Shown piece after piece: positions 1 through 61,769 of a DNA stretch of 64,000 nt. The DNA is taken from sequence record NC_071007.1; one strand, given 5' to 3'. Position 1 is the first letter of the stretch. Each line of letters opens with the position of its first letter. A program made the position numbers and the translations under genes. The notes beneath the pieces were generated by a model that ran no database searches, was not told the DNA's origin, and worked only from the letters and a program-made list of their open reading frames with translations.

Positions 1-3000
1 TTGTGGTTCTATTTCATAACCAGTTGGATTATTATACCGACCATATGCGTACAATTCATTACCGATTTGTGTTACAAATAGTTCATCGTATCCGAAGAAC
101 TCCTCAACTCTAGCCTTAACCGGTTTCTTGACCAATGTATTTTTACCATTGACCATAATTACACCACCGACAGGATAAAGAGTAAATCCTTCTGTAGTGC
201 CCATTACACCACCTGTCAAGGTTAAGAAACCATGTTCTCTGGTAAATACACCGTAATTATTAGGTGTCTTTCTAAACGCCCACATTCCTTTAGATAACAT
301 TACAGGACTTTGATAATTGATATGTAATCTGTGCGGAAGTTTGGTTCCATAACAAATTTCTTTATCATAATCTATCTGGTATCCATGTTCAGGATCATAA
401 GGAAAAATGGGATCTACTGAATCTAACTTTGGACCAAAGGTAAAACTTCCTGTCAAGGGATTATGGACAATTTGCAGTTCAATATAGAAGTTATTAAAAG
501 GTGCCACATTAAGCATGACATCATATTTAACTTGGTTCAACGCATCTGACATCTTCATGATATAAACATCTTGGGATTTAAAACTATCGTATCCAAGAAT
601 TGCACCATGGTTAATCTGAAGAGTTGACTTTTTGTTAACATTCATTGTGTTAACAACAATACTACTAGCAATTGATCCCTGCGGTTTAATCGTTTTGCGG
701 CCAGTTCCGTCAGTATGAACATAACAGTTTTTGATGATCCCGTAATAACAATCTTTTTCATTTGTAGGGTAATCGCCATGACCAACACACTGGTTCATCC
801 AAAATAAAGTTGATTTAAAGAAAAAGAATGTTTTATGCTGTTTAAACCATCCGCCGGCATTTTTACTAATCCAATTTAAAATATCTTCATGGATAGAAAC
901 TGGATTGTTAAACGTAATGGGGGTTTCAAGATTATTGGGATCAACTTCATAATTCAGATAGTTAGTGTACCCATTCCCATCATTGAATACCATATTGTTA
1001 ATATTCATAGTGCTAGAAAGATCATCATTTTCAATTAAGAAAGATGGAATATCCTCCATTGAACCGGTTATCCAATTTACGCTATCTGTTTTGGGACCTA
1101 AATAACTACCATAAGGGTTTCCTTGTAAATAACTAGTTCCTGCATCAACAGTTACTAACCCCCACTTATAACGATTACGATAATCGCGACTATAAGTCAA
1201 ATATGTAATCTTTAATTTAGTAGCGACACCAGGATCTGGAACAGGGACAGGATCATCAGTTAAACCATCATACCTTGGCCAACGGTTATTCATTGCAATA
1301 TCAAGAATGGCACGTTCTTGTTCTGTTGCAGTTCCCAATGCAATTTTTACCGGTATGTGCCTTAAATGGTCACCATACATTCCATCATGTTCGATGTTGG
1401 ATTGCGCGACGTAACTGTATTTTGTTGGTTTTGGAAAATAATTATTACCATTATCAATAAAGCTAGTTACTGACGAAATAGAATGGTCGTAACTCCCTAT
1501 GTACTGACGATTATAAAAAGTAAATGTTTTTAAATGTCCGCCAGCAGGATCAAACACACCATCTTGACAAAGAGGGTGTTCAGGCTGTTCTTTGACATGA
1601 GGGGTATAAGCTTTAAACAAGCCAGTGTCGGTTAAATCCCAATTACTATCCAGGGTTTGTTTTGCTTGTTCAAAAACTTGATCAGTAACAATATTTACTG
1701 ACATTTGTTTAGTAGCGTCATTAAAGACAAAATCTAAACGGAAATCAAGATAACCATGCCAGTATTTTGTTTTATCTTTATTAAACCAACCAAAGTAAAT
1801 CCGCATCAGACCTTTATGTCTAATACGCATCTCCCACCCAAACGTTAATTTATTTAATCGCTTAATATCTAATGAATTAAAAAATTCCTCATTTTCTTCA
1901 TCTTGGATATTAAAAAGATTTTTAAATGGAATGACTAAATTTACTTCACCTGTACCGTTAGTATCAACAGCCAGAATTTTAGAATTAACCGGGACTGTTA
2001 TTTGATTAGTTTGGTATTTAATAGGATCTTTGGTGATGAATTCAGCTAATCTATTAGGAGGACCTTCTTGTAAATCCATTGACCACGGATTCAGTTTTAA
2101 ACCTGTTAATGACAGTTTTAAATATGGTACTGACGAACTTTCCCCTGGGTAACTACCTTTATTAATTTTCAAAATAAAATGATAAAGATAGTCTTCTGCA
2201 CTTTCAAATATACCTTCAAAAGGAATTGAGTTTCCTGTTGTTTCTAATACATCAAAAGGAAGAACACTTTTATTAAAAGAACGTAAACAAACTTTATTCC
2301 CTTCCATGTACGAAAATGCAGATCGTCCAAAAAGGTTATCTGAAACTTTCATTACAGTACCCAAACTTCCCGGAGATCTCCAACCTCTTAACTGGGCTGG
2401 CCTAGATCGACGAACATCAATACGTTTAGCGTAGGCACGAACTTTTGTACCGCCACGGGAAGTTTGTACTTCTGGCGCTGTCCCAGATGGGGTAGCTGTG
2501 TATCGACCTAATTCAGGGGATTGATTTAAATTAGGGAAAATATGCATCCCAATTTGTGTTCCAAAGTACCACGCTGTATCCCCAATAAATTGTTTAGGGT
2601 CACTCGGGCTTTGTACTAATTCGCCTTTATAAAAATCATAGTGCCATTGTGGTATTTCACCTAAAATACCGCCTGATGCAATCGGTAATGACCGAGCTGG
2701 GATATAAGACCGAGGATCCACTTTGACACGTTCGTCAATGATTGCTGACAGACCTGCTGGATTGCAATATAAATTTTGAGCAACACCATCGATATGTTGC
2801 TGGATTGTTGCCATGTCCCAGTTATCTTTTTTACCTAATCCAACGGTACTTTTTGTTTCACCATGGACCGGACCAACTTTATTAGTATGTTGCAATAAAT
2901 GTTCATCTATTGAAGCACCCATTTCATCAAGCTTGGTACTAATAACGTTTCTAACTTCCTCGATGATTTCTTCTTGGGTAATCTCAATGACTTCACCTGG

Positions 3001-3210
3001 GGCTGGGATAGGAACTTCAGGATCTGTAATCCCGTCACTTCTGGGCCAAGTATTATTGACAATGACGTCCAAAATAATCCGGTCTTCATCCGAAGATCCA
3101 GAAGACTTTTCTTGTATTTTTCTATCTACTCGGATAAAGGCATCTAAAACCACCCCAATAGGGCTTGTCCGTTCGACAGGAACTAAAGGTTTATCTTTAT
3201 CAATTTTCAT
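1..3210 (-). CDS. Large tail fibre/baseplate-appendage protein, 3'-truncated by the window edge (>=1070 aa); absent from the ORF track
   Basis: Manual translation from ATG at 3210 (MKIDKDKPLVPVERTSPIGVV...) finds no in-frame stop down to base 1. Contains the fibre-type segment PVHGETKSTVGLGKKDNW, similar to the NPH-x-TK-x-GL motif of the two upstream paralogs, followed by a long aromatic/Gly/Asn-rich beta-type region. An in-frame ATG at 3255 lies inside the terminator hairpin and is less likely. Confidence 0.8.
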   Translation of the reverse strand, partial: MKIDKDKPLVPVERTSPIGVVLDAFIRVDRKIQEKSSGSSDEDRIILDVIVNNTWPRSDGITDPEVPIPAPGEVIEITQEEIIEEVRNVISTKLDEMGASIDEHLLQHTNKVGPVHGETKSTVGLGKKDNWDMATIQQHIDGVAQNLYCNPAGLSAIIDERVKVDPRSYIPARSLPIASGGILGEIPQWHYDFYKGELVQSPSDPKQFIGDTAWYFGTQIGMHIFPNLNQSPELGRYTATPSGTAPEVQTSRGGTKVRAYAKRIDVRRSRPAQLRGWRSPGSLGTVMKVSDNLFGRSAFSYMEGNKVCLRSFNKSVLPFDVLETTGNSIPFEGIFESAEDYLYHFILKINKGSYPGESSSVPYLKLSLTGLKLNPWSMDLQEGPPNRLAEFITKDPIKYQTNQITVPVNSKILAVDTNGTGEVNLVIPFKNLFNIQDEENEEFFNSLDIKRLNKLTFGWEMRIRHKGLMRIYFGWFNKDKTKYWHGYLDFRLDFVFNDATKQMSVNIVTDQVFEQAKQTLDSNWDLTDTGLFKAYTPHVKEQPEHPLCQDGVFDPAGGHLKTFTFYNRQYIGSYDHSISSVTSFIDNGNNYFPKPTKYSYVAQSNIEHDGMYGDHLRHIPVKIALGTATEQERAILDIAMNNRWPRYDGLTDDPVPVPDPGVATKLKITYLTYSRDYRNRYKWGLVTVDAGTSYLQGNPYGSYLGPKTDSVNWITGSMEDIPSFLIENDDLSSTMNINNMVFNDGNGYTNYLNYEVDPNNLETPITFNNPVSIHEDILNWISKNAGGWFKQHKTFFFFKSTLFWMNQCVGHGDYPTNEKDCYYGIIKNCYVHTDGTGRKTIKPQGSIASSIVVNTMNVNKKSTLQINHGAILGYDSFKSQDVYIMKMSDALNQVKYDVMLNVAPFNNFYIELQIVHNPLTGSFTFGPKLDSVDPIFPYDPEHGYQIDYDKEICYGTKLPHRLHINYQSPVMLSKGMWAFRKTPNNYGVFTREHGFLTLTGGVMGTTEGFTLYPVGGVIMVNGKNTLVKKPVKARVEEFFGYDELFVTQIGNELYAYGRYNNPTGYEIEPQ

Positions 3211-3229
3211 AAGTTCTTCTCTGTTAAAT

Positions 3230-3261
3230 AAAAAGATGGAAGGTTTCCCTCCCATCTTTTT
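3230..3261 (-). terminator. Intrinsic terminator-like hairpin, GAAA tetraloop
   Basis: Minus strand AAAAAGAUGGGAGG-GAAA-CCUUCCAUCUUUUU, U-rich 3' flank, immediately after the stop at 3267. Confidence 0.75.
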
Positions 3262-3266
3262 ATTAT

Positions 3267-6200
3267 TTAAGCCGGAGGGAGAGGAATAGGTGTATCTGTT
3301 TCACCATCCAGACGAGGCCAAGTATTATTCATCGTGATATCAAGGATTGTCCTATCACGAGTCGGAATATCCCCACCGTAAAGTTCTGATTGTTTAATAA
3401 AACGATATGTCCCATCTTCATTAAGTTTACCAGAAGATACGGGGATACCTGCATCGCGAACTCTTGTTAAAGGGTAACCCGAAATAGCAAATGGTTGGTA
3501 TAGATCAATTGTCACAATACCGTTTTCACCGGTTGTTATTTTTGCAACCAGTAAAGTATGACCATCAGCGTGTTTTAAGGTTTTGGTGAGTTCATAAATA
3601 CCTCTCGAACCAACAGCTGTGCAATATAGATAGAAAACTGTGTTTTTGTATAAATCAGAATACGTTCTTAAATCAAACGTTTTCTTTGTAGCTTTCATGG
3701 TGTAACCGTTAAATGTAACAGTTACGTCACTATTAACAAAAACAGTCCAGTTATCTTGAACAAATATTGCACCTAAGAACGCCAGGTCATTTATAGTAAA
3801 CCCATCTGACCCAACCATCCAATTCGCTAGTGTTGGTTGAACGATATTGGCCGCCGACCCGGTGGCAACAACAGGATAACCGTTTAAAACACCAAGACCA
3901 TCCACTGCTTGAACAGTTGAGTTATACCCAACATAAACATGGTTAGCTGTAAAAAACAACTCCGGTCTTCCATCAGCTCGACGTTTATCATAACGGACAT
4001 TAGGACAATCAACATATCCTGCCGTTATAAAGAAACAACTTGGATATGAATGAATGACAAACTCGTTATTAGTCGTTCCTACATTATAAACTTCAGTTCG
4101 AGGTTTTAATAATGTATTTCCGATATTAGATATACTTGAACTCCAATAACCATTAGTTAAAACGAATGTGTTATCAGTATTACAAACATCAATCCCCGGC
4201 GTGGTATCAACAACTGGGGAATTACCATACCGATCAACACTGGGATAGTACGTTCTTGTTCCTGTAACATTAATAGTTATCTTTTTAAAACCAGTTACGG
4301 GATCAATGCCATTACTTGTCCAGGTAAATGTAATTATAAACCCACGTGTAACGTGTGGATCCTGGGAATAATGATACATGACCAGCATTGTAGAACTATA
4401 AACAGCTGCGCTCTCTGCACCCGCGATTGGACACAAATCAATGGAAACAAATAAATCTGTTATGTCACTGAATCGAGCACCAATATATTGCTTAGGTATA
4501 TCAAGATACTGTTCTTTTGTTAATACAACAATTTCTTCTGGCTTATGTTCAGCAACTAAAACCTTTGTATTTTCGTCATAATTCCATTTCATTGTTATCG
4601 GAAAATACATACGGCCCAAGTCAGGATCAACACTTTTTTGGTCAACGCTTGGTTTAGCAATACTGGGAATGGGATTTGAGTTCCAGTCATTTAATTTAGG
4701 ACGATGTATGTATAAACCTAAGGAATGGGTTGTTGAATACTTATCTCTTTTTTGTGGCCAGTTCCTAATCGGATGAGGTTGCCTTAAGTTTTTAACCACC
4801 CCATATTTGGAATTAGGTTGTCTCCCAAATATTTTCTTACTAATAAATGGTGATTGAAGTTCTGGTCTAAACATGTATTTATTACCATCACCTCCCTCAG
4901 TCATCCTATTGAATCCAATAGTTGTACCTGTTTCTGCGGCAGCCATGAATTGTTCAATTGGTTTTGTCTTAACGCCACCATTATATTCATAAATGTCGCT
5001 GAATACCCTAGGGAACCCTGCGATTCCAAATGGAGTCGGAGGATCATGTCTTACTGACCATGTTGTTAAATCACCTCTATCAGTATATTGAGCTGTAGGG
5101 TTAAAAATGCTTGTGTAATCTTTATCAATATCCCCACTAGTATTTAAATGAAGATTGACATTAAGATAAGGAGGTCCGCCTTCAACAGCAGTAACAGTCC
5201 CGACAGGACCAAACCCAGGTATCCAACTCCAACATGCTCTACTGAATGAGTTATTAAATAATAGAACAATTCCATCATTGTCATTATCGGTTATATAACA
5301 TTTTTCATCAGCTGATAGATTAGTTGTTTTACCAGTTAAAACGTCAAACGTAGGTTTTTTCCATTTTGGATCTATTGTCATAGTTAATGCATTAAAATCC
5401 AAATCGTAATTAATGCAAACAGTAGCCCATGTACTTCCCGTGTTTCCATTGACGTTATAAACCCAATAAAGAGTAGCAACTATTTTTAATTTCGCTATAC
5501 CTTTAACATCTGGATTTTGTAAAATGAAAAAGTTTCTACGACGGTGGGATTGAACAAGTGTACAGGGTTGAGTAAAATTAGATAAATAGCTATTTACAAG
5601 TCCGTTTGATAAGACATACTCACCAACACGTATATTTGGTGAAGATGCTTTTCTTACTCTATCGACTGTGTCATAAGCTAATGAAACCTGCACCGGTGTG
5701 ATTTTTGCTTTATCCGTTGAAGTTAAAGCTGAGACAGGGAATCTAAATATTTTTAAGGTATAGTTAAGGGGACTCCCTACCGGTGGAACAGCTACACCTG
5801 TGGTATCTTGAGATACCCCAAAGAAATAAACCCAATCACCCACTTTTGCGATTGTTAATGCAGCGTAAAAACCAGAATCGGAATCGATTCCAGCTGTCTT
5901 CATTGGAGTGACATCAACTTCAACAAATGAATGCGCGGCAGGGTTTAATGTCCCGTTTGACAAACTAACCATAATGTTCGAGGCGGGAGAGAGCGAGGCA
6001 ATTGCTAGTACATCTCGGCCTGATCCAGAAATAACGTATTCTGGGTTGATTGATTTAGCTGTAAAGTCAGGGTGGGCATAAGGAACATATGTCATTACTA
6101 CATTACTGGAATTGTAACGGTCAAGCATCAACTCCTGATAAATATAATAAAGACCTTTGACCTTTCCATCAAACTGTCTAATTAAACCAACTAACCAACC

Positions 6201-7139
6201 ATTACCTTCCCTAACAAAAACTGAATTCTCATAGTCGCCGCCCAAACCTTGGAATGACCCACTAATCGACGGAGGGAGATATATCCCAGAACCATAATAA
6301 CTAAAAGGGAGTTCATTCTGAAAAAGGTATTCTTCAGAATCTGGTTCTGATTCTGAAATTAATTTAGCTAACCCGGCAGGAGTTGAATAAAGATCTTGCC
6401 TTAACCCTTCACTATCTTGTTGAGGTGAGGCTGTCTGATAGTTTTGGATTTTTTCAATATTAACATCAACCGGTTTAATGCCGTGAGGGTTAACGGTTTT
6501 ACGAGCATGATTCTTTAAAGCATTCCAGCGAAGATTATAGATATAATCTAATTTATCCCAGGAGTCTTTTTCCATTTGGTTTAATAAACCAGATATTTTT
6601 TCGCTTTGTGCTAAAACCCTACTTTTCATTAAAGTAAATAGCTGGAGCATGTTTCCAAAACCAACTATTTCTTCTTTATTACGAACGTCCATTTGATGAC
6701 TGGATGGGTAAAATGTTTTTGGTATCCCTTCTATCTGGGTTTCGTAATCAATTTTACCACCTGTAATTAACGCATTTTCTAAAAGATCAAGTAACTTATT
6801 TCTTGAAATAACTCCAGAACCGACTTTCTGATAAATGACATCAAGTTCTACAGCCGTATTAAGAATATGGTCTTTTAATTCAATATGGAGATAAACTGCT
6901 TTCCCCAGCATTGTTGTTAATTTTGGAACTTGGGTTTCAAAGATATAATCTTGACCTTTATTTAACCTTGTTCCGCCATTATAGATAACTACCCCTTCTT
7001 CATAAAAAGGGCCTTCCGATGGAACGATCCAAGGAATAGGAATATCTGCAACTTTATGTTTTTCCTCAATTTTATAAAGAGGGTTAGTTGCAGTATAATC
7101 TATGTCGATAATTTCAATATCTTTCATAGCAAACCTCAA
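3267..7139 (-). CDS. Tail fibre-like virion protein (1290 aa), paralog of 7192..10830
   Basis: N-terminal ~330 aa align by eye with 7192..10830 (IDYxT-NP, GGKIDYETQIEGIPKTF vs KVHWDNIDNKPLWF, NPHG/NEHG motif, SGSFQGLGG vs DGSFEGLGG, NGTLNPAAH vs NGTLDPSRH). C-termini end with similar IDLYQPFAISG / IVPYNRFSMDG segments. Position resembles the phiKZ gp131-135 fibre cluster. Confidence 0.75.
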   Translation of the reverse strand: MRFAMKDIEIIDIDYTATNPLYKIEEKHKVADIPIPWIVPSEGPFYEEGVVIYNGGTRLNKGQDYIFETQVPKLTTMLGKAVYLHIELKDHILNTAVELDVIYQKVGSGVISRNKLLDLLENALITGGKIDYETQIEGIPKTFYPSSHQMDVRNKEEIVGFGNMLQLFTLMKSRVLAQSEKISGLLNQMEKDSWDKLDYIYNLRWNALKNHARKTVNPHGIKPVDVNIEKIQNYQTASPQQDSEGLRQDLYSTPAGLAKLISESEPDSEEYLFQNELPFSYYGSGIYLPPSISGSFQGLGGDYENSVFVREGNGWLVGLIRQFDGKVKGLYYIYQELMLDRYNSSNVVMTYVPYAHPDFTAKSINPEYVISGSGRDVLAIASLSPASNIMVSLSNGTLNPAAHSFVEVDVTPMKTAGIDSDSGFYAALTIAKVGDWVYFFGVSQDTTGVAVPPVGSPLNYTLKIFRFPVSALTSTDKAKITPVQVSLAYDTVDRVRKASSPNIRVGEYVLSNGLVNSYLSNFTQPCTLVQSHRRRNFFILQNPDVKGIAKLKIVATLYWVYNVNGNTGSTWATVCINYDLDFNALTMTIDPKWKKPTFDVLTGKTTNLSADEKCYITDNDNDGIVLLFNNSFSRACWSWIPGFGPVGTVTAVEGGPPYLNVNLHLNTSGDIDKDYTSIFNPTAQYTDRGDLTTWSVRHDPPTPFGIAGFPRVFSDIYEYNGGVKTKPIEQFMAAAETGTTIGFNRMTEGGDGNKYMFRPELQSPFISKKIFGRQPNSKYGVVKNLRQPHPIRNWPQKRDKYSTTHSLGLYIHRPKLNDWNSNPIPSIAKPSVDQKSVDPDLGRMYFPITMKWNYDENTKVLVAEHKPEEIVVLTKEQYLDIPKQYIGARFSDITDLFVSIDLCPIAGAESAAVYSSTMLVMYHYSQDPHVTRGFIITFTWTSNGIDPVTGFKKITINVTGTRTYYPSVDRYGNSPVVDTTPGIDVCNTDNTFVLTNGYWSSSISNIGNTLLKPRTEVYNVGTTNNEFVIHSYPSCFFITAGYVDCPNVRYDKRRADGRPELFFTANHVYVGYNSTVQAVDGLGVLNGYPVVATGSAANIVQPTLANWMVGSDGFTINDLAFLGAIFVQDNWTVFVNSDVTVTFNGYTMKATKKTFDLRTYSDLYKNTVFYLYCTAVGSRGIYELTKTLKHADGHTLLVAKITTGENGIVTIDLYQPFAISGYPLTRVRDAGIPVSSGKLNEDGTYRFIKQSELYGGDIPTRDRTILDITMNNTWPRLDGETDTPIPLPPA

Positions 7140-7148
7140 AGAAATAAA

Positions 7149-7180
7149 CTGGGAGTATGATCAAAAGATCGTACTCCCAG
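7149..7180. terminator. Intergenic 14-bp hairpin
   Basis: CTGGGAGTATGATC-AAAA-GATCGTACTCCCAG (one non-Watson-Crick pair) between tandem minus-strand genes. Confidence 0.65.
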
Positions 7181-7191
7181 ATGGTTATTAA

Positions 7192-10100
7192 TTATTCAGG
7201 TACAAAGTCAGTAGCCGGATTGAGAATACTTGAAGTATCAGCAACTTCGTAAATACTCCCTCCGGTAGCTAAAATAATAGAACCTTGTCTTGTTTCTCCA
7301 ATGATGGCACCATCCATACTAAACCTGTTGTAAGGAACGATTGTGTTAATTTGAGAAGCTCCACAAATAACGCTAGCTATTAATGAATTAACTGCAGTTT
7401 CTGCGCTCTGAGTAGGAGTAATGAAATAAATGGGTCTCCCGGCACCATATTTTAAATAGACGTAAAATGATTTATTAGCGGGGTTAGAATCAATATCCCG
7501 AATATCCATATAGGTTGCTGGGATATCGTACGCCTTGCCACCAAGAATAACATTTTTCATTGCTTTAAAATAAATAGTAAATGTTGAGCTTAACAAGTTA
7601 CTAAACGTCATGGTGTTGTCAGTTTCATATCCGCTAGAACCAACGCGATCATAGTAATTCCCATTTGCTGGGACGGTGTACTTCCTAGCTATTATTCCAG
7701 CACCTTCTGTCAAGGCTCTATTTTGGGTAGTAGGAACACCCAGTGTTGGACCTGGTGTAATAACACTTATGTTTTCCATAATGACTGAAGGAGCTTTATA
7801 AGCTCTTGCTCTTGAAATAGTAAAGTCATTCGCTATTTCAAGCCCCATTCCGGGCATTAGTGTATCACCAATAACACCATAGCGATGTAAAGATCTACAC
7901 TGTGCAAATATCCCGCCAGTGTTAACCAACACTCCACTACTGTTTGCTACGTTCCAACTTTGGAAATTAACGGCACTATGAGAGGTGAGTTGGTTAGGGA
8001 ACCCAAGAACTTCTGTATCAGTATAGGCAGTGTCATGGAAGAGTACTTTTGAAATAAAGTTTTTCAAAAATGTAATATTGACGTCGGAGTAATACTGGTA
8101 ACCATCTACCGTAGTTGGTGTTCCTATCGGAACAATTTTAACAGGAGCCGCTGACATATAAATGGAACTAATATTGTTGCCGGCCGCCTCTTTCCAACTA
8201 ACTAAAAGAATAAAGAATTCTTCATTGGTAGTGGTCCATGCTCTCGTCAATGTCCAGCTTTTACTGACATCCTTTCCAGTGACACCAATTTTGGCTAATT
8301 CAATCGATAATTGCCGATTCATAGCCTGCTTTAACTGATACACAACTTTAGGAATAATTTTAATTTCTTTCCCAACAATCCGTATATCATTTTCGTAGCA
8401 AAGCAACCCGTCACCGATATCGGAAGGTGACCCTAACAAAGTAGAACATGCATCAGCACCTAAGAATTTCCTAAAGGTATTATTTCTCCCTGCAACAACT
8501 CCTGGCATCGCTGCTTGTGTAATAACACATTGCGGACCCAAGTTTAAATCATAACTTTGATTTAAAAGAGGATAATGTTTTACAGGTGTTACTCCAAAAG
8601 TCATAGTTAATAAATTATTAGTTCGAGTACTCCAATCTGCATTTAAGAAATTGGTTGCCCTCGCTATCCATTTTGAAGTCCCTTTAGTTAATCTTTCATC
8701 AAGGTCAGTAACAGATTGCCTTACAATGACAACTGACGTAGTTGGATCTCTATCGTCAGCTACACCACACCATGGATTAAAGTTACCAGCAGAAAACCCT
8801 AATGGGTTTTTCTCATCAATCGTGATGTCATCCAATATTTTAAAATTAATTGGATCTTCTTTATCGATCATTGTTTCTGCTGTTTTATAAATCCCATTTT
8901 TAAATAATCTCCCTACCAAAGGAACCGTCGGAGAGATAATGGGAGAAACTTCCAAACGAAGATCATCGCTAAGAAAAACACTTCCGGCATTGTCTTGGGC
9001 TGTAAAGACAAATTGGGGTATCTTGTAATTTTTGAAATCTTCATAATCCGGTGACAATGTAATGTTTTCAGGATTAATGGTGTATAACTTTTCTCCTGGA
9101 CCACGTTCAATTTTAACTGTGGGAGTTGTTCCATTAATCGGTTGGAACAGACCTTTCCAGACAACAGTTAATAACTGAGATAAATTACTTCCATCAGTAA
9201 CCCAGAAACAACTCTGTTCCACCATCACTCCCCAGTTTCCATTTGTATGTTTTTTCATAAACACATGAGGAGAGCGATATTGCCAGAAACTGTAAAGAGG
9301 TTTAGTCGGTAAAAATGCTGCACGTACAATTTTGTTATTATTGTCATATTTTCTAATGTACGGGGTAAAAACTTGATCGTTCATTTTACCATCGTCAGTT
9401 TCAAAATCAATATTAGCAAGCTTATAAGTGCCGTCTTGGTAAATATTGGTAAAAACTAACCAACCATCAAGTGAAGTATCGCTTGTAGGGGAAATAATAA
9501 AACTTGGACGAAGTGTTTTTATTAACGCAGCCCCTGCCCCCATAACAATACAGTTAAACTCTCGGTGATTTCTATCCGCACAAACTTGAGCTAATCGCCA
9601 GTTGGAGCTATAATTTAACCAATCGCCGGTAATACGCTTAAGAATGTGTCTGGAAGGATCTAACGTCCCATTGGTTTCTGCCCAATACCAAATATTTTTA
9701 TCCTCATCACCTACTATGAGAATATTTGGACCTGAACCGTTTATGACCGCATTTAAATTTGCACCATCTGCTGTTGCAGTGGGATGGCTATAACGATAAC
9801 CGGTATTCTCCCAAATAGGACGACCTTCACCCCAACGCTGACATTTAATAAAATAAAGTCCTTTTATTCGACCATTGTTTCTACGTTGTAAAACAAGTAA
9901 ATCGCCGTTGGATTCTATTGTCGCAGCACAACGATGAATGGTTCCACCTAGGCCTTCAAAAGACCCATCAATTTTAGGCGGTATAAAGGAATCAGACCCA
10001 TATCTAAGAATAGGTAATGCACCCGCTGGGAATAGACGCTCATTACGACCCGCTGCTAATTCTGCGGCTTTTGTGGCGTTATAAGGTGTAATATGTAAAT

Positions 10101-10830
10101 CAGGTCTTATCCCTTCCAATGTCTCTTGTAACGTTGCTGTCGCAAAGTTGTCAACAAGATCTTTTCCAAGTGCTGCTTTGGTGACGCCATGTTCGTTATT
10201 GTGCGCTAAATCATGGTCATCAATCAATTTGAATAACTGTTTGCGATATTCTTCAATATAAACCAAAATGCGCTCTTGGAATTTATTTAGACGAATACTA
10301 ACATTAGGGGTGTTATTTTCTTGGATGGTGATAAGACGTAATATTTGTTTTGCCATATCGGCAAATGCAAAGAACTGGTACGTCCAATCATGTTGATGAA
10401 TATCCGGAATAAACCAAAGTGGCTTATTATCAATATTGTCCCAGTGAACCTTCCGGTCATCTTCGGTAAGGTTTCTTAACATGTTAAGTATTTCATTACT
10501 TAATTTATTAAAGTTACCTACTGTCTGATAGTCGATTTTCCAATTAGAGACTTCCTTATTCAGAATACGAATATAGAGTCCAACAGGTTTATTGGTGTAT
10601 TTTGTCAACCCGCCCATGATTCCGTAAAATTCATAGTCAACGTCAAGTTCCATTCGTTGGCCATTGGGGAAATACATTTTTACACTATTGATGTAAAAGG
10701 GAGCTTGTAATGGAATAAAAAAATTGTTATGAGGGTTCTCAGAACGTTCCCCTGCCTCTAATGTAATTTGGTTAAACGGCGAAACACCAGTTAAGTCCAA
10801 TTTATAAAGACCGTGATCTTCTCTGTTCAT
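7192..10830 (-). CDS. Tail fibre-like virion protein (1212 aa)
   Basis: N-terminal YKLDLTGVSPFNQITLE attachment-type domain, HNNEHGVTKAALGKDLVDNF fibre motif, long beta-rich body; paralog of 3267..7139. Confidence 0.75.
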   Translation of the reverse strand: MNREDHGLYKLDLTGVSPFNQITLEAGERSENPHNNFFIPLQAPFYINSVKMYFPNGQRMELDVDYEFYGIMGGLTKYTNKPVGLYIRILNKEVSNWKIDYQTVGNFNKLSNEILNMLRNLTEDDRKVHWDNIDNKPLWFIPDIHQHDWTYQFFAFADMAKQILRLITIQENNTPNVSIRLNKFQERILVYIEEYRKQLFKLIDDHDLAHNNEHGVTKAALGKDLVDNFATATLQETLEGIRPDLHITPYNATKAAELAAGRNERLFPAGALPILRYGSDSFIPPKIDGSFEGLGGTIHRCAATIESNGDLLVLQRRNNGRIKGLYFIKCQRWGEGRPIWENTGYRYSHPTATADGANLNAVINGSGPNILIVGDEDKNIWYWAETNGTLDPSRHILKRITGDWLNYSSNWRLAQVCADRNHREFNCIVMGAGAALIKTLRPSFIISPTSDTSLDGWLVFTNIYQDGTYKLANIDFETDDGKMNDQVFTPYIRKYDNNNKIVRAAFLPTKPLYSFWQYRSPHVFMKKHTNGNWGVMVEQSCFWVTDGSNLSQLLTVVWKGLFQPINGTTPTVKIERGPGEKLYTINPENITLSPDYEDFKNYKIPQFVFTAQDNAGSVFLSDDLRLEVSPIISPTVPLVGRLFKNGIYKTAETMIDKEDPINFKILDDITIDEKNPLGFSAGNFNPWCGVADDRDPTTSVVIVRQSVTDLDERLTKGTSKWIARATNFLNADWSTRTNNLLTMTFGVTPVKHYPLLNQSYDLNLGPQCVITQAAMPGVVAGRNNTFRKFLGADACSTLLGSPSDIGDGLLCYENDIRIVGKEIKIIPKVVYQLKQAMNRQLSIELAKIGVTGKDVSKSWTLTRAWTTTNEEFFILLVSWKEAAGNNISSIYMSAAPVKIVPIGTPTTVDGYQYYSDVNITFLKNFISKVLFHDTAYTDTEVLGFPNQLTSHSAVNFQSWNVANSSGVLVNTGGIFAQCRSLHRYGVIGDTLMPGMGLEIANDFTISRARAYKAPSVIMENISVITPGPTLGVPTTQNRALTEGAGIIARKYTVPANGNYYDRVGSSGYETDNTMTFSNLLSSTFTIYFKAMKNVILGGKAYDIPATYMDIRDIDSNPANKSFYVYLKYGAGRPIYFITPTQSAETAVNSLIASVICGASQINTIVPYNRFSMDGAIIGETRQGSIILATGGSIYEVADTSSILNPATDFVPE

Positions 10831-10848
10831 ATTTTAATCTCGCAAAGA

Positions 10849-10876
10849 GAAAGAGAGATCCGAAGACCTCTCTTTC
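10849..10876 (-). terminator. Hairpin with cUUCGg tetraloop
   Basis: Minus strand GAAAGAGAGGUC-UUCG-GAUCUCUCUUUC then UCUUUG; the G-U wobble and UUCG loop both favour folding on the minus-strand RNA. Confidence 0.75.
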
Positions 10877-10882
10877 CATAAA

Positions 10883-11647
10883 TTAATTCCAAAGACCTTG
10901 AGCGTATGAACGAATAAGGTATTTTGTTGCATTTACGTTCATGAGCAATTGAGAACTTTCACTTGTCAATAGTTCTTCGTGTTCGACCATTTCCCAGTCT
11001 TTTAAATGTTCCAATCCTAAATCTGCTAAAGTTGCTTTATGCGCATCACGAAGATCAGCTTCCAAATGTCGCTCAATCAATGCCTGCAAAGATTCGGGGT
11101 TCCCAGGGGAGGCGACAGCATCGATATAGCTTTGCATCGCAACCAACATATCATCGTACCCAATGGTATCACTAGCAGGATGATCGTGGGGGTCCGGAGG
11201 GAACACCAACGGAATATTGACAATTTGATTCCAGTCAGCGCGACGTGGACTAGTAATGATGGTCGCAACAGCTTCTGCATAGGCGATGTCATCCAATACA
11301 AAATCGGCACCAATGGTATTGTATTCAATAACAAGGTTAGTTGGATCAGTTACATTATGGACTTGGATCCCACCATAAACTAATTGTGAATAACGTCGAA
11401 TAAATGCACCAAACGGGTAAACAAAAGAAAAGTCCCCTGTTTCCATTCTAAGTTCACGACCAGAGTCCTTTAGAAATACCTTAAAACTAGTTGTGAAAAA
11501 AGGACCTTTGCGAGGAAGAAAAACCACACCTTTTGGATTTGGTTCAACGTGAACTAATTCATCTTTGATTTCGTTTTCAGGGTTATCGTTAAACGGATTC
11601 CAAGGATAAATTAATTGACCAACTGAGGTGGCGATATCATTTGCCAT
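10883..11647 (-). CDS. Virion structural protein sharing the fibre N-terminal domain (254 aa)
   Basis: YPWNPFNDNPENEIKDE, APFF-like GPFF, ADWNQIVNIPLVFPPDPHDH resemble the N-terminal ~150 aa of the two fibre proteins (DIPIPWIVPSEGPFY; KVHWDNIDNKPLWFIPDIHQHDW). Confidence 0.65.
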   Translation of the reverse strand: MANDIATSVGQLIYPWNPFNDNPENEIKDELVHVEPNPKGVVFLPRKGPFFTTSFKVFLKDSGRELRMETGDFSFVYPFGAFIRRYSQLVYGGIQVHNVTDPTNLVIEYNTIGADFVLDDIAYAEAVATIITSPRRADWNQIVNIPLVFPPDPHDHPASDTIGYDDMLVAMQSYIDAVASPGNPESLQALIERHLEADLRDAHKATLADLGLEHLKDWEMVEHEELLTSESSQLLMNVNATKYLIRSYAQGLWN

Positions 11648-21858: not shown

Positions 21859-22386
21859 TTATGCCAGTACGGAGTCCAGATCGGAACCTTGTTGTTCTAC
21901 CAGATCCAGCACGTCCATGTCATCAGTTTCACCTGATTCCATGATTTTGTTGATCCGCTGAATAGCGGAATCACCAATGCTCTTAACCAGAGCACCGGCC
22001 AGGATACCGACGCAGAAGGATTGAGTACCTTCCAGGGTAGCCATACCAATTGACGGTTTAGCGACGTAACCGGCACCGGCACCGGCAGCGATCGCCAGAC
22101 CGTTGGTGATGGAGTTCCCGATGGTGAAGTCTTCAACCAGCGCTACGGGCAGGATTGCAAGGGTAGCACCAGCTGCACCGATGAGGGCGGCTTTGCCTTT
22201 GCTCATACCCAGGGTTTCATCCAGGTGCTTTTGAGCTTCTTTGGCGGCCTTGACCAGATCTTGATGCAGTTGTTTGTTTTTGGCTTCCAGGTTTCCCAGG
22301 GCATTTTCTACGATATTTTGTTGCTCAACGCCAGGAGCAGCGGTGGTTTGATCTTTGGCGGTGGTGGTTTCGTTGATGGTTTTCAT
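21859..22386 (-). CDS. Hypothetical glycine-zipper membrane protein (175 aa), probably early and highly expressed
   Basis: AGAGG SD; three Gly/Ala-rich hydrophobic stretches; visibly GC-richer than neighbours with CTG/GGT/ACC codons; TATATTAC motif upstream. Confidence 0.7.
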   Translation of the reverse strand: MKTINETTTAKDQTTAAPGVEQQNIVENALGNLEAKNKQLHQDLVKAAKEAQKHLDETLGMSKGKAALIGAAGATLAILPVALVEDFTIGNSITNGLAIAAGAGAGYVAKPSIGMATLEGTQSFCVGILAGALVKSIGDSAIQRINKIMESGETDDMDVLDLVEQQGSDLDSVLA

Positions 22387-32537: not shown

Positions 32538-33449
32538 TTACTCCTCTAAATACTTTTTCCACTTACCAGTTTGAGAGTTCAGTTGCTGTAAAATCTTGGT
32601 GTTTATATGCATGATGCTATTAAGGGATTTTACACCTACGTTGAGAGGATGAATTGCATTTTTAATGACACTTTTATCTTCGCTTGGAATATTCCAAGTC
32701 GAATCGTAAATACCGCGGCCCTTACATTCCTCATTACACTTATTTAACACCTGAACCCACTGTTCCAAAACCGCATTTCCTGTTTCACCAATTTTTTTCA
32801 AATCTGGAAGAATGGGTTTGATTGATTGACAAATTTCTTCTACTCTTTCAGCTGTATCAGCAAAAATCAATTTTTCATCCAATCTTTGTAAAGCAGAACC
32901 TGTCTTACTGACTAGTTCTAAAAAGTGTTTTTCAGAACTGGTATCAATTCTCCCAGCATTTAAAAGTCTAATCGCATTTTTAATGAGTTCATTTTGATTG
33001 TTAGGATTCTTTTCTTTGGTTTGGAGCAAATCTTTAGCAATGAACTCTAACTCCACAGACGCGTCAATTATTGTTTGTATTTCTATTCGTAAAACCCCTT
33101 TATCCTTTAAGGTTACATGGGATGTTTCTTTCTTGTTAGCGTTTTCAATAGCATTTAGATTGGTTTCTATACTTTTAACTGTTTGCGAAGATTCCTTTTT
33201 GTTTCCAAAAATAAAATCTCTTATGGCCTTTATTAAAGCTTTAATCATCTCATAAACTTTAATTGCCCCTGCTTTAATTGCACTACCAAAACCTTCCTGT
33301 CCAGCGATTTGTCCTAAATCGCAATTATTCAGTTTAAGAACGGTTTGGGTATAAATTGAATTTGGTGATTTAAAATCTTTATTGCAAATTGATTCAAATC
33401 CAAATATGGTTGTAAAGGCGTGATCTATTGTTTCTGTTGTTACTTCCAT
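32538..33449 (-). CDS. Internal head protein paralog (shared leader plus variable C-terminus), 303 aa
   Basis: N-terminus DHAFTTIFGFESICNKDFK...QTVLKLN...AGQEGFGSAIKAGA...IRDFIFG is nearly collinear with 42526..43533 and 59685..60692. Confidence 0.75.
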   Translation of the reverse strand: MEVTTETIDHAFTTIFGFESICNKDFKSPNSIYTQTVLKLNNCDLGQIAGQEGFGSAIKAGAIKVYEMIKALIKAIRDFIFGNKKESSQTVKSIETNLNAIENANKKETSHVTLKDKGVLRIEIQTIIDASVELEFIAKDLLQTKEKNPNNQNELIKNAIRLLNAGRIDTSSEKHFLELVSKTGSALQRLDEKLIFADTAERVEEICQSIKPILPDLKKIGETGNAVLEQWVQVLNKCNEECKGRGIYDSTWNIPSEDKSVIKNAIHPLNVGVKSLNSIMHINTKILQQLNSQTGKWKKYLEE

Positions 33450-42525: not shown

Positions 42526-43533
42526 TTAGCTATTCATCCATGCTTCAAATTCTTCAAGAGAACCAGTTGGGACGGTAAGATTATCAATCTTAGAATTTCC
42601 ACCAACAATTTCTTTATTAATTTTTGAAATAGCGCTGCCTACTTGAATAATGAAATTGTCACATTCAGCAACTAGTTTAGCCATTTTAGTTGCGGCTTTG
42701 CCTAGCGCTTGAGTGTATTTCAACACAGCTTCTGCTTTAGTGTGTTCATTACCATCTTTAAGTAATTTCTCGTAATAGACGGTTGCTCTTTCCAATGATT
42801 CATTGACGTTTTGCAATACGTCTTTTGCAACAGTACGGAACTTTTCTGCTGCTGTAATAATTTTATTCCCATTTTCAACACTTTGGATTACAGCAAAGGC
42901 TTCAATCTCTTCAGTACCTTCCTTTTTATCCAATCGAGAAAAAGATTCAGACAACACGCGGAAAGCGTTTAATAACGTCTGATGATCTCGTTTACCGTCT
43001 AAATTTATTGTTACTTTACCAGTAATTCCACCTTGGACATAACCTTCAATTTTTGCGTCACCAACGTCATTGAAATATTCGCTCATAAAGGTGACGTAGG
43101 GTGCGAACCGGACTTCAATAGTCTTTGGTGTTGCAGCTTTTTTAATTTTATTAACACTAGGTGCAAGTTGATCTGTTTTCTTTTTGACAACTTCTTCTAA
43201 ATCAGGTTGTTTTTTAATTGTTTCTAAAACAACCTTTGTTTCTTTTTCGATTTCTTTTACCTGAAAATCCTTGACTTTACTTTTACTACCAAAGAAGAAC
43301 TCTTTGATACCTTTAATCAAGTTCCAAATCATTTCCAGTACTTTCTTAGCACCTTCTTTAATAGCGCCGCCCAAACCTTCCTGACCTGCAATAGCAGTAA
43401 GATCACAACCATTCAGTCGCAAAACTGTCTGGGTGTATTTGGCGTTAGTTGTTTTAAAATCTTTATTGCAAATGGATTCAAACCCATCAATGGTATCAAA
43501 AACATGATCCATTTGATCAATATTTACGTTCAT
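42526..43533 (-). CDS. Internal head protein paralog (335 aa)
   Basis: AAGGGA SD before MNVNIDQMDHVF at 43533 (track start 43587 is over-extended); GFES and GQEG sites; shared leader. Confidence 0.75.
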   Translation of the reverse strand: MNVNIDQMDHVFDTIDGFESICNKDFKTTNAKYTQTVLRLNGCDLTAIAGQEGLGGAIKEGAKKVLEMIWNLIKGIKEFFFGSKSKVKDFQVKEIEKETKVVLETIKKQPDLEEVVKKKTDQLAPSVNKIKKAATPKTIEVRFAPYVTFMSEYFNDVGDAKIEGYVQGGITGKVTINLDGKRDHQTLLNAFRVLSESFSRLDKKEGTEEIEAFAVIQSVENGNKIITAAEKFRTVAKDVLQNVNESLERATVYYEKLLKDGNEHTKAEAVLKYTQALGKAATKMAKLVAECDNFIIQVGSAISKINKEIVGGNSKIDNLTVPTGSLEEFEAWMNS

Positions 43534-43589
43534 AAATTCCCTTATTAATTTTTGTTTGATGTAATCAAAATATTGACTAGATAACAAAG

Positions 43590-59684: not shown

Positions 59685-60692
59685 TTATTTAAAACTAGCG
59701 ACATTGTCATCTAACATAAGCTTATCAAATTCAGCAAGTATTTGTTTACTATTATTATCATTACCAGAAATATTTGCCTCCATTTTGACACAAACATCAG
59801 CAATGTTAAAAATATATTTCTCGCAATCTTTACTGAGTTTTACCAACTTGGCAATAGATTTCCCAAGTTGGATAGTGTAAGTTTCAAGACGTTCGTGTTG
59901 CTTAGTAAGGTTTTCATCTTTCCCAACAAACTGTTTATTCCTGTTCAAAGCTTGGGTTGCAATTTCAAGATCAGCAGTCATAGTCGCAATTAGCTTCTTT
60001 GCTTCTGTACGAACAGAAGCAATAATATTGGCCATTGATTGTCCGTCTTCGACTGCCTTAAAAAGAGCAAGTATTGAACCGTCCTGAGTTCTACCATTTT
60101 CATGGTCTTTGATCATTTTAGTCAGTTTTTCAAGTTCTGCACGAAGCTTGGTCCCGTTATAACCTTCAGCATTACCAAGTGTAGTAATAGAAAGACCTGT
60201 TAGGTCAAGTTTTCTATAGGACGCCGACATAGTCTCTGTCATTACATCCCAGAATTCATTGTAACTTGCAAAACGCACGCTTCCATATTTCCCAGAAAGA
60301 ATACTTTCCAGTTTTGCTTTGGATGCGGTCGCTTCTTCCAATAACTTTTCTAGTTTATGATTTGGAGCGGCCTTGATTACAAATGTCGATTTGGGAATTT
60401 GTTCAATCACTTTTGAAAGACTTGTGTCACTTTTACCAGAACGACTGCCAAAAAAGAATTCCTTAATCGCCCGTAAGAAATTCATGATCATTTCGAGTAT
60501 TTTCTTACCTCCAGCTTTAATAGCGGTACCAAACCCTTCTTGACCAGAGATCGCTCCCATATCTACGCCATTGAGCTTCAGTACAGTTTGAGCGTAGATA
60601 CCATCAGGGGTTTTAAAATCTTTATTAGCAATAGATTCAAATCCAGAAAGTACACTAAAGACATGATCCATTTGTTCAATATTAACGTTCAT
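59685..60692 (-). CDS. Internal head protein paralog (335 aa)
   Basis: MNVNIEQMDHVF...GFES...GQEG...AIKEFFFG leader; similarity to 42526..43533 continues patchily through the body (VRFASY/VRFAPY, AVEDGQ/SVENGN, YTIQLGK/YTQALGK). Confidence 0.75.
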   Translation of the reverse strand: MNVNIEQMDHVFSVLSGFESIANKDFKTPDGIYAQTVLKLNGVDMGAISGQEGFGTAIKAGGKKILEMIMNFLRAIKEFFFGSRSGKSDTSLSKVIEQIPKSTFVIKAAPNHKLEKLLEEATASKAKLESILSGKYGSVRFASYNEFWDVMTETMSASYRKLDLTGLSITTLGNAEGYNGTKLRAELEKLTKMIKDHENGRTQDGSILALFKAVEDGQSMANIIASVRTEAKKLIATMTADLEIATQALNRNKQFVGKDENLTKQHERLETYTIQLGKSIAKLVKLSKDCEKYIFNIADVCVKMEANISGNDNNSKQILAEFDKLMLDDNVASFK

Positions 60693-60796: not shown

Positions 60797-61180
60797 CTAT
60801 GCATTCAATTGGTAATTATCTTCCATTTCTTGTTTTTGAGGATCAACAAGATTTAGAAAATATTCTTCTTTGATTTTCTTTAAACTAGCTAAAGGGGAAT
60901 TCAATGTAAAGAATTCTGGATACGGGACAATATCAGATTCAACATCAAATCCAGGAATAAATAATTTATTTTTAGGTGTAATGTAAATGAATATTAAACT
61001 GTCGCTTAATGATCGTACTGCGTGTTTAGTCCCTGTTGGAATTGTATCTTTATTAAAATCAGAAATATGACAACGATAACCTACCAGCTTTGGCAATATT
61101 AATTGAACTGTATTCTTTTCACAGAAAAAAGATCCAATATAATTATTGTCTTTTAAAACAATTAATTCTGAAATTAACAT
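60797..61180 (-). CDS. Hypothetical protein (~127 aa)
   Basis: GGAG SD before MLISEL at 61180. Confidence 0.55.
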   Translation of the reverse strand: MLISELIVLKDNNYIGSFFCEKNTVQLILPKLVGYRCHISDFNKDTIPTGTKHAVRSLSDSLIFIYITPKNKLFIPGFDVESDIVPYPEFFTLNSPLASLKKIKEEYFLNLVDPQKQEMEDNYQLNA

Positions 61181-61190
61181 AATAACTCCA

Positions 61191-61769
61191 TCAATTTGCA
61201 ATCCGGTCAATATAACGTTTCATAATCTGATTTGTTGTTTCCAACATTTCATTTTTGAATTGATTCAACAAATCTTGTACTTCTTGATTAGTGTAGGTTT
61301 CTTTATGGAGTGACCATTGATTGATGTGGGTCTTTGGCTTAAGCAGCTCTGTGTGTAATTTAACTTCCCCGATAGGGCTGAAAGAATGATAAAGGGTTTC
61401 TAAAGCAGTCAAAACAGAATTGAATTCATTATCCCTTCCTACGACAACATAATCTTCCTCGTTAGTTAAAGGAAACTCTTTAAATTCCGACATTTGTTTA
61501 AAAGTCTTTTCAATACTAATAAAGATATAATTTTTATTTGCAGTTTTTATAATATTGAGATAACATAGATTTTTACTATTGAACCGGTTTTTAACCGCAG
61601 TAAGATTATCTAATCTATTTTTCCATCTACTAGATTCTTTTCCGGATACTTCTAGTGGATTAATACCCTTGTCCCAGCTCAAATAGATATACCCACTGGT
61701 GTTATAGACAAAATCCGTAAAACCACCATTACTGAATCGATTCAAGATAACGTTATCATTAATAGACAT
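61191..61769 (-). CDS. Hypothetical protein (192 aa), possibly early
   Basis: AAGGA SD; early-promoter-like motif at 61799-61816. Confidence 0.6.
   Translation of the reverse strand: MSINDNVILNRFSNGGFTDFVYNTSGYIYLSWDKGINPLEVSGKESSRWKNRLDNLTAVKNRFNSKNLCYLNIIKTANKNYIFISIEKTFKQMSEFKEFPLTNEEDYVVVGRDNEFNSVLTALETLYHSFSPIGEVKLHTELLKPKTHINQWSLHKETYTNQEVQDLLNQFKNEMLETTNQIMKRYIDRIAN

Follow-up and report, generated by a model that had tools for sequence, protein, structure and literature searches.

We analysed a window of 64,000 nucleotides (nt) of sequence record NC_071007.1, which is identical to positions 124001-188000 of the Aeromonas phage ZPAH34 record (OM810292.1 and NC_071007.1). This phage belongs to the genus Chaoshanvirus and has a genome of 234.5 kb. 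The window encodes a phiKZ-type major capsid protein, and the published description of ZPAH34 includes multisubunit RNA polymerases as well as a homologue of chimallin (PMC10321303). These features make it a phiKZ-like jumbo phage; its host is an opportunist of fish and humans. Four minus-strand genes form a cluster that encodes the proteins p254, f1 (1212 residues), f2 (1286 residues) and f3 (1309 residues), with a baseplate assembly gene next after it on the opposite strand. The same cluster order is found in AerS_266, CF8, AhC3_1, LAh10, D6 and seven metagenomic contigs, and f3 directly follows f2 in every locus examined. Between them, f2 and f3 of ZPAH34 carry three copies of a 28-residue peptide motif (Table 1). 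We show here that all three derive from a single small and portable peptide module, found specifically in the Chaoshanvirus lineage, and that two neighbouring subunits of a gp131-like cluster acquired it at three exposed, permissive sites.

Table 1. Motif copies, added segments and genes, in window coordinates unless stated otherwise (pLDDT, predicted local distance difference test).
Feature	Position	Strand	Evidence and remarks
C-terminal copy, last 28 residues of f2	3270..3353	-	Translation; profile 57.6 bits; orthologous copy in AerS_266, CF8, L014, L015
N-terminal copy, f3 residues 44-71	2998..3081	-	Translation; profile 61.2 bits; diverged orthologous copy in AhC3_1 and metagenomic locus L007
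Internal copy, f3 residues 633-660	1231..1314	-	Translation; profile 64.3 bits; decayed in CF8 lineage (22-25 bits)
C-terminal extension of f2, 34 residues, with motif	3270..3371	-	Alignment and C-termini; AlphaFold2 pLDDT 28-42
N-terminal insertion of f3, ~37 residues, bounds approximate	2995..3105	-	Gap in LAh10, D6 and AVP1-type homologues; residues 35-79 pLDDT <50
Internal insertion of f3, 38 residues, bounds +/-3 codons	1210..1323	-	Clean 38-column gap in AhC3_1, LAh10, D6 and AVP1-type homologues
f3 gene, UOX39573.1	1..3210	-	First 1070 of 1309 codons; remainder, including DUF285 leucine-rich repeats, past the left end of the window
f2 gene, UOX39574.1	3267..7127	-	gp131-like N-terminal domain, beta-rich body, conserved C-terminal tail, then motif; annotation, PHROG, homologues, AlphaFold2
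f1 gene	7192..10830	-	1212-residue paralogue with gp131-like N-domain, without motif
p254 gene	10883..11647	-	gp131-like N-domain only; PHROG match; tblastn to PHIKZ131 E 2e-7; Goslar gp25, gp29
Tailspike cluster of ZPAH34	L019:14096-22979 = record 98095-106978, outside the window		Two proteins of beta-helix type; one of endosialidase-chaperone type, with a Peptidase_S74 chaperone domain; one GDSL esterase

Minus-strand translation of the three stretches reproduces exactly the peptides first quoted in the original prediction, at the coordinates that it gave. The core pattern occurs exactly three times in the six frames of the window, tblastn finds only three motif places in the whole ZPAH34 genome, and a profile scan bears out the earlier remark that the 1212-residue paralogue, f1, has no copy. 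Sixteen of the 28 aligned columns are identical across all three copies, and a BLASTP comparison of f2 with f3 picks up the copies at E values of 5e-7 and 3e-8, so that the peptides are homologous, as proposed, despite their unrelated local contexts. Each is a short amphipathic segment with a conserved Trp-Pro-Arg / Asp-Gly core and a proline-rich tail. As DNA, the copies share 47-52 of 84 nt (56-62%), and identical residues with degenerate codons use the same codon in just 5-8 of 15-16 cases. Because synonymous sites are scrambled while 16 columns are invariant, the motif is conserved as a peptide and not as DNA, in agreement with the claim of protein-level conservation. The copies contain no palindrome or repeat of their own, and the motif matches no Pfam family and no solved structure.

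Orthologous copies share 23-27 of 27 residues within the group of ZPAH34, AerS_266 and L014, and 26-27 between CF8 and L015, whereas functional paralogous copies share 16-22 of 27; within a genome, paralogous copies are identical at 39-56 of 81 nt. Because orthologous copies are more alike than paralogous ones, the triplication is older than the genus split. Gene conversion between copies was dropped as a candidate on the same observation. Decay is seen in the CF8 lineage, where the internal copy is down to 10-12 of 27 residues and the terminal copies are conserved and alike (21/27). The ratio of nonsynonymous to synonymous substitution (dN/dS) is 0.02-0.18 in the motif codons versus 0.05-0.10 in the rest of the genes, values that are rough given that synonymous sites are near saturation. 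Judged from these codon comparisons, we show that the motif is kept as a peptide by purifying selection, independent of its context. This bears on whether the proline-rich insertions are passive spacers or hinges that merely add reach or flexibility and have no specific partner. All three copies end proline-rich and are predicted to be unstructured, and in LAh10 a short stretch rich in proline lies ~60 residues upstream of the internal site. However, spacers in three unrelated contexts would not have kept 16 of 28 positions identical while synonymous divergence became saturated, nor would their dN/dS be expected to be as low as in folded parts, and we regard a purely passive role as improbable.

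More than 60 related phages without the motif have orthologues that are collinear with the two proteins that carry it, and f3 of ZPAH34 aligns over its full length with f3 of other genera at 35-50% identity. Across 47 members of the f3 family, the flanks of the internal insertion are invariant at residues 613-618 and 620 before it and at residues 675 and 681 after it. The N-terminal insertion is placed between the family-wide N-terminal peptide (f3 residues 1-35) and a long helix (residues 79-109). Outside the Chaoshanvirus group, all 18 of the f2 homologues examined stop 2-3 residues past the shared C-terminal end, before the extension begins. Because the flanks are orthologous across genera, no differing modules are joined at the motif, and the description of its sites as module boundaries or module-swap junctions fails: the copies are clean insertions and an extension within full-length collinear orthologues, and their DNA identity is too low for homologous exchange. 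We therefore view f2 and f3 as conserved scaffolds and not mosaics. The motif sites mark permissive surface positions in these scaffolds, which is useful even if the motif itself is a lineage ornament.

A DNA-level origin, with the copies acting as recombination linkers for module exchange or as an in-frame selfish repeat, fits these findings poorly. Rickettsia palindromic elements are selfish insertions of this kind; they lie in frame in protein genes, are conserved as DNA, are palindromic and occur in many copies. The ZPAH34 copies resemble them as peptide-sized, in-frame insertions at surface-permissive sites of conserved proteins, and an insert of peptide size at three sites in neighbouring genes, together with similar half-units at a fourth site in f3 of Ferozepurvirus, would suit such a repeat. 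They differ in being conserved as peptide only, in numbering just three per genome and in having no palindromic or repeat structure. Furthermore, the copies are only 56-62% identical in nucleotides, their flanks are orthologous across genera with no modules exchanged there, and selection acts on the peptide. This explanation is largely refuted, and we consider it very unlikely.

The profile search that had been proposed as a check was run exhaustively, with a three-copy profile scored against 1.84 billion representative proteins. It retrieved only Chaoshanvirus-type proteins, namely CF8-type f3 (two stretches) and f2 (C-terminal end), besides two extra matches, P0004 and P0005, which we rejected as unrelated tandem-repeat proteins that fit only the proline-rich or the Trp/Asp-Gly part. 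A degenerate DNA pattern of the motif had no matches in IMG/VR. Local profile scans identified 17 motif instances in seven lineages. Five Chaoshanvirus-type lineages (ZPAH34, AerS_266, L014, CF8 and L015) have three copies per genome, and AhC3_1 and L007 have one diverged N-terminal copy each, with f2 of both ending without a copy. These scans found no motif in LAh10, D6, L008, L009, L011, L012 or other homologues of f3 and f2. Because AhC3_1 and L007 hold only the N-terminal copy, this copy is the older one and the other two are specific to Chaoshanvirus. Absence from the orthologous fibres of related phages had been named in advance as grounds for giving up a docking role; the result is split, as the genus has conserved the motif but phages outside it do not have it.

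Partial units, similar to the motif's first half, occur at another variable site, which corresponds to ZPAH34 f3 residues ~352-395. Two such units are present in f3 of Ferozepurvirus (AVP1-type; P0013-P0022) at residues 325-340 and 421-436, and one weaker unit is present in L007 f3 at residues 349-364 (L007:11045-11092). They may be an older source of the motif. A six-unit motif-like tandem array in AVP1-type f3 was dropped, as only two units were supported.

The setting of the copies was examined in AlphaFold2 monomer models built with family alignments. Residues 190-1070 of f3 adopt a confident monomer fold (mean pLDDT 80.7; predicted template modelling score, 0.77), and f2 residues 700-1213 are mostly folded, with pLDDT mainly 80-97 but falling off beyond residue ~1120. 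Both bodies are predicted to be beta-rich. Their Foldseek matches, which are weak and have low template modelling scores, are multi-propeller proteins, and these matches indicate a fold class for the models and not a relative. All three motif copies have a pLDDT of ~28-45, with adjoining segments above 90. The internal copy lies between predicted strands at residues 615-626 and 665-675, with residues 629-662 below 50, and the predicted long helix of f3 (residues 79-109) follows the N-terminal motif. The copies are thus predicted to be on exposed or flexible segments.

Such exposure, along with the presence in one ZPAH34 tailspike of an autoproteolytic chaperone domain of another kind (Peptidase_S74), could be taken to favour a processing site, that is, cleavage by a phage or host protease at the motif during fibre maturation. 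However, cleavage at the extreme C-terminal copy would free no product, the internal copy is flanked by two strands that belong to a single conserved body, and no protease-related family matches f2 or f3. We found nothing to support the processing junction offered in the original prediction, and cleavage at the motif is scarcely probable.

Two further segments have a pLDDT below 50 and are highly conserved across genera, namely the C-terminal tail of f2 (residues 1214-1252, window 3372-3488) and the N-terminal peptide of f3 (residues 1-35, window 3106-3210). The motif was added beside both of them. From the models, we consider them candidate universal contact segments between subunits.

The cluster can be assigned to a known group through its N-terminal domains. 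A domain of ~250 residues (phrog_2163) is common to p254, f1 and f2, and p254 matches PHIKZ131 over residues 13-249 (tblastn, E 2e-7). Goslar gp25 and gp29 match p254, f1 and f2, and Goslar gp26 matches f1 alone. By sequence similarity, the N-domains of p254, f1 and f2 are related to phiKZ gp131. f3 keeps only the last ~85 residues of the gp131-like region, a helix plus collar segment that it has in common with f1, f2 and p254. The f3 family comprises 65 homologues in the protein collection (OBP_145, AH04_144, AVP1_0025 and others) and 33 phage records, with no f3 homologue in phiKZ or Goslar at E 1e-5. At its C-terminus, f3 has PF03382 (DUF285/BspA-type) leucine-rich repeats, precomputed on the full-length protein and on most homologues; these lie past residue 1070, outside the window, and have no connection with the motif. 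The four cluster proteins otherwise have no significant Pfam match, and sequence and profile searches of solved structures with the fibre proteins returned nothing relevant. An N-domain profile matched only a generic tail-collar fibre repeat among solved structures, and f3 residues 1-110, when used in a word-indexed protein search, found their own cluster only. We conclude that f2 and f3 are not classical fibres. They are instead members of a phiKZ gp131-like cluster, with bodies that AlphaFold2 folds as monomeric beta-rich domains. Note that f2 was previously given as 1290 residues, counted from the TTG at nt 7139 where the mechanically called open reading frame (ORF) opens; all orthologues begin at the position of the annotated ATG, nt 7127, from which the count is 1286.

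Docking is the best class of explanation for a selected, displayed peptide of this type, and we tentatively favour a reading in which the motif serves as a flexible docking tag, on display to a partner common to all copies, and adds connections to the adsorption apparatus. Each copy would be displayed on a flexible segment and would bind the same partner. Phyletic co-occurrence suggests that this partner is most likely the ~60-residue N-terminal anchor of the accessory tailspikes, in which case f2 and f3 would be branch points carrying tailspikes. As far as sequence comparison can tell, the motif can only be accessory and not a basic assembly principle, because more than 60 orthologous fibre complexes do without it. 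Of the docking idea in the original prediction, the part that envisaged end-to-start chaining of fibres as an essential principle is excluded by these orthologues and by AhC3_1, which keeps only the N-terminal copy.

Several tailspikes with common N-termini have been described in AerS_266, and attachment through these N-termini was proposed (PMC10673249). We find four tailspike-like proteins with a common ~60-residue N-terminal anchor in ZPAH34, ~16-27 kb from the fibre cluster, and likewise four in AerS_266. The Peptidase_S74 domain of this set is found solely in UOX39547, a tailspike unrelated to f2 and f3, whose C-termini have no match to this chaperone domain (PF13884). The number of anchor places per genome (tblastn) is 4-6 in Chaoshanvirus, 1-3 in Ferozepurvirus and 0 in Ludhianavirus. 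In profile scans of complete genomes, AhC3_1 has exactly one diverged anchor, in a 163-residue protein, and LAh10 has no anchor and no motif. Motif copies and anchors thus compare as 3 versus at least 4 in Chaoshanvirus, 1 versus 1 in AhC3_1, 2 half-units versus 1-3 in Ferozepurvirus and 0 versus 0 in LAh10 (Ludhianavirus). This apparent co-variation of motif number with anchor-bearing tailspikes is suggestive, though co-occurrence is not proof. We rank the tailspike anchor first as the partner, and a handshake of motif with motif second.

Several points weigh against a tag for tailspike anchors. The co-occurrence may reflect two or three independent events in evolution, with phylogeny as a confounding factor, and the counts are not one to one, with three motifs to four or more anchors. 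In the CF8 lineage, the internal copy has decayed though four anchors persist. By tblastn, the anchor also occurs in many unrelated phages, such as Pseudomonas D3-like siphophages and Klebsiella jumbo phages, whereas the exhaustive profile search placed the motif nowhere outside the Chaoshanvirus group; the anchor is therefore able to use other docking surfaces in phages that have no motif. The low pLDDT of the copies may also stem partly from the alignments, in which only 2 of 47 and 4 of 17 rows contain the insertion.

A more specific form of the docking proposal is a portable socket, in which one f2 copy and two f3 copies would form a pseudo-threefold platform that receives the trimeric tailspike anchor. 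We give this arrangement only a slim chance. If it were true, ordinary gp131-like subunits would be the branch points of a multi-enzyme adsorption organ, and the tailspike capacity of a chimallivirus-like jumbo phage would be determined by its number of these peptides.

The window was also scanned against LAh10 for a lineage-specific partner gene, and no plausible fibre partner was found in it, only three small ORFs and extra paralogues resembling phiKZ internal head proteins. The small ORFs (window 21859-22386, 60797-61210 and 61191-61769) are without counterparts in the 78 kb of LAh10 sequence that is syntenic and have no family match, and the remainder of the window is collinear with LAh10. 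At the Chaoshanvirus tailspike locus, beside the ribonucleotide reductase beta gene (L026:23048-41092, record 101547-119591), LAh10 encodes a YadA-like protein, two 1077-residue proteins and one 2794-residue protein. The accessory adhesin set is swapped wholesale between genera.

The copies could alternatively bind each other. The C-terminal copy of f2 would then pair with the N-terminal copy of f3, perhaps together with the internal copy, as an inter-chain clasp tying f3 to the far end of f2. The additions lie exactly at the C-terminal end of f2 and behind the N-terminal peptide of f3, both of which are conserved and left unplaced by AlphaFold2; the CF8 lineage has kept its N- and C-terminal copies alike (21/27) while the internal copy decays; and f3 always follows f2 in the loci examined. 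However, AhC3_1 and L007 hold the N-terminal copy though their f2 has none, and because of these cases a single copy must function without a partner copy, unless f3 is oligomeric. The helix and collar segment of f3 is, moreover, common to f1, f2 and p254, and in phiKZ it belongs to one baseplate-proximal bundle (PMC13250141), which would put the N-terminus of f3 near the N-domains of f2 and not near its C-terminus. On balance we judge a clasp to be unlikely.

A somewhat smaller probability attaches to direct binding of a host-surface component or metal ion, by which the copies would multiply weak contacts along the fibre complex. In favour of a ligand peptide, conservation at acidic, Asn, Trp and Gly positions holds whatever the context, the copies are predicted to be exposed on flexible segments, and only a narrow, host-linked lineage of phages has the motif. 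Less easily accommodated are the N-terminal copy, which adjoins a helix expected near the baseplate and would be poorly sited for host contact (PMC13250141), and the phages LAh10 and D6, which infect the same host species yet lack the motif. The motif's failure to match any Pfam family or solved structure also counts against a ligand.

The docking-tag reading can be compared with systems in which adsorption proteins are known to be joined. In the T4 long tail fibre, the neighbouring gene products gp34, gp35, gp36 and gp37 are joined end to start into one adsorption organ. These joints are unlike the ZPAH34 case, as the termini that form them are essential and occur family-wide, whereas the ZPAH34 peptide is a lineage-specific add-on that orthologous complexes lack. 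Precedents for peptide docking in phage adsorption organs are available (PMC6872550, PMC13352976, PMC13742148). The nearest known principle is that of Klebsiella phages with multiple receptor-binding proteins (RBPs), which use a conserved docking peptide and a branching domain (PMC6872550), a system that has been tested experimentally (PMC13352976). There, a short conserved peptide on otherwise unrelated RBPs joins the proteins of the adsorption organ and gives branching. ZPAH34 is similar in having a set of tailspikes with one common N-terminal anchor, and in having a short peptide conserved among otherwise unrelated adsorption-protein contexts of one phage. It is unlike these phages in the position of the peptide: theirs is at the N-terminus of the secondary protein, with a T4gp10-like domain as the socket, whereas the ZPAH34 peptide is repeated in large conserved scaffolds at three positions, including an internal loop. 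Neither Pfam nor solved-structure searches found a T4gp10-like branching domain in f1, f2 or f3. By analogy, the motif would be at most a variant of the docking-peptide principle, set in another family of proteins and unusual for its internal position.

Closer relatives provide two other comparisons. The nearest case among chimalliviruses is Goslar, of the same virus group as ZPAH34, with DUF7941 proteins whose protomers are each predicted to dock, through a disordered segment, on the globular domain of the next, making filaments at the peripheral baseplate (PMC13742148). The ZPAH34 motif differs in being limited to one genus and not chimallivirus-wide. A phmmer search of Goslar gp22, gp23, gp31, gp33 and gp34 against all ORFs of the window and full-length f3 gave no match, and membership of f2 and f3 in the DUF7941 family was dropped, as no Goslar DUF7941 protein matches them and they are gp131-like or OBP_145-like. 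In phiKZ, the fibre base is a hetero-hexamer of gp131-like N-domains that includes a six-helix bundle (PMC13250141). The ZPAH34 cluster is similar, in that p254, f1 and f2 carry the N-domain and f3 shares the helix and collar segment, and also in its beta-rich, propeller-like bodies, which have been reported for the gp131 C-domain (PMC13250141) and are monomer predictions on the ZPAH34 side. Both phiKZ and Goslar are unlike ZPAH34 in lacking the motif, along with f3.

The peptide matters for the question of how phiKZ-like jumbo phages hold their many fibre and tailspike proteins together, as a sequence-defined candidate for one missing connection. The virion structures of phiKZ and Goslar leave the peripheral baseplate and fibres largely unmodelled (PMC13250141, PMC13742148). 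Collinear fibre proteins in which the motif is absent, single or triple provide a natural comparison series for virion maps.

Some features of the window are independent of the motif's function. Three paralogues with weak similarity to phiKZ internal head proteins (PF12699, below cut-off) lie at window 32538-33449, 42526-43587 and 59685-60692, and two of them are without a syntenic counterpart in LAh10. An antisense ORF of 158 codons (window 2813-3289, plus strand) spans the f2/f3 junction and two motif copies; it is unannotated in either record and has no support as a gene. On the minus (coding) strand, a strong stem-loop followed by a U-rich tract is present at all three junctions of the cluster (window 3227-3264, 7149-7180 and 10848-10877), with folding energies of -24.6, -23.6 and -19.4 kcal/mol and z-scores of -6.6, -4.8 and -2.8, and one of the hairpins has a UUCG loop. 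They resemble terminators or transcript-stabilising hairpins and could set unequal levels of the four cluster proteins.

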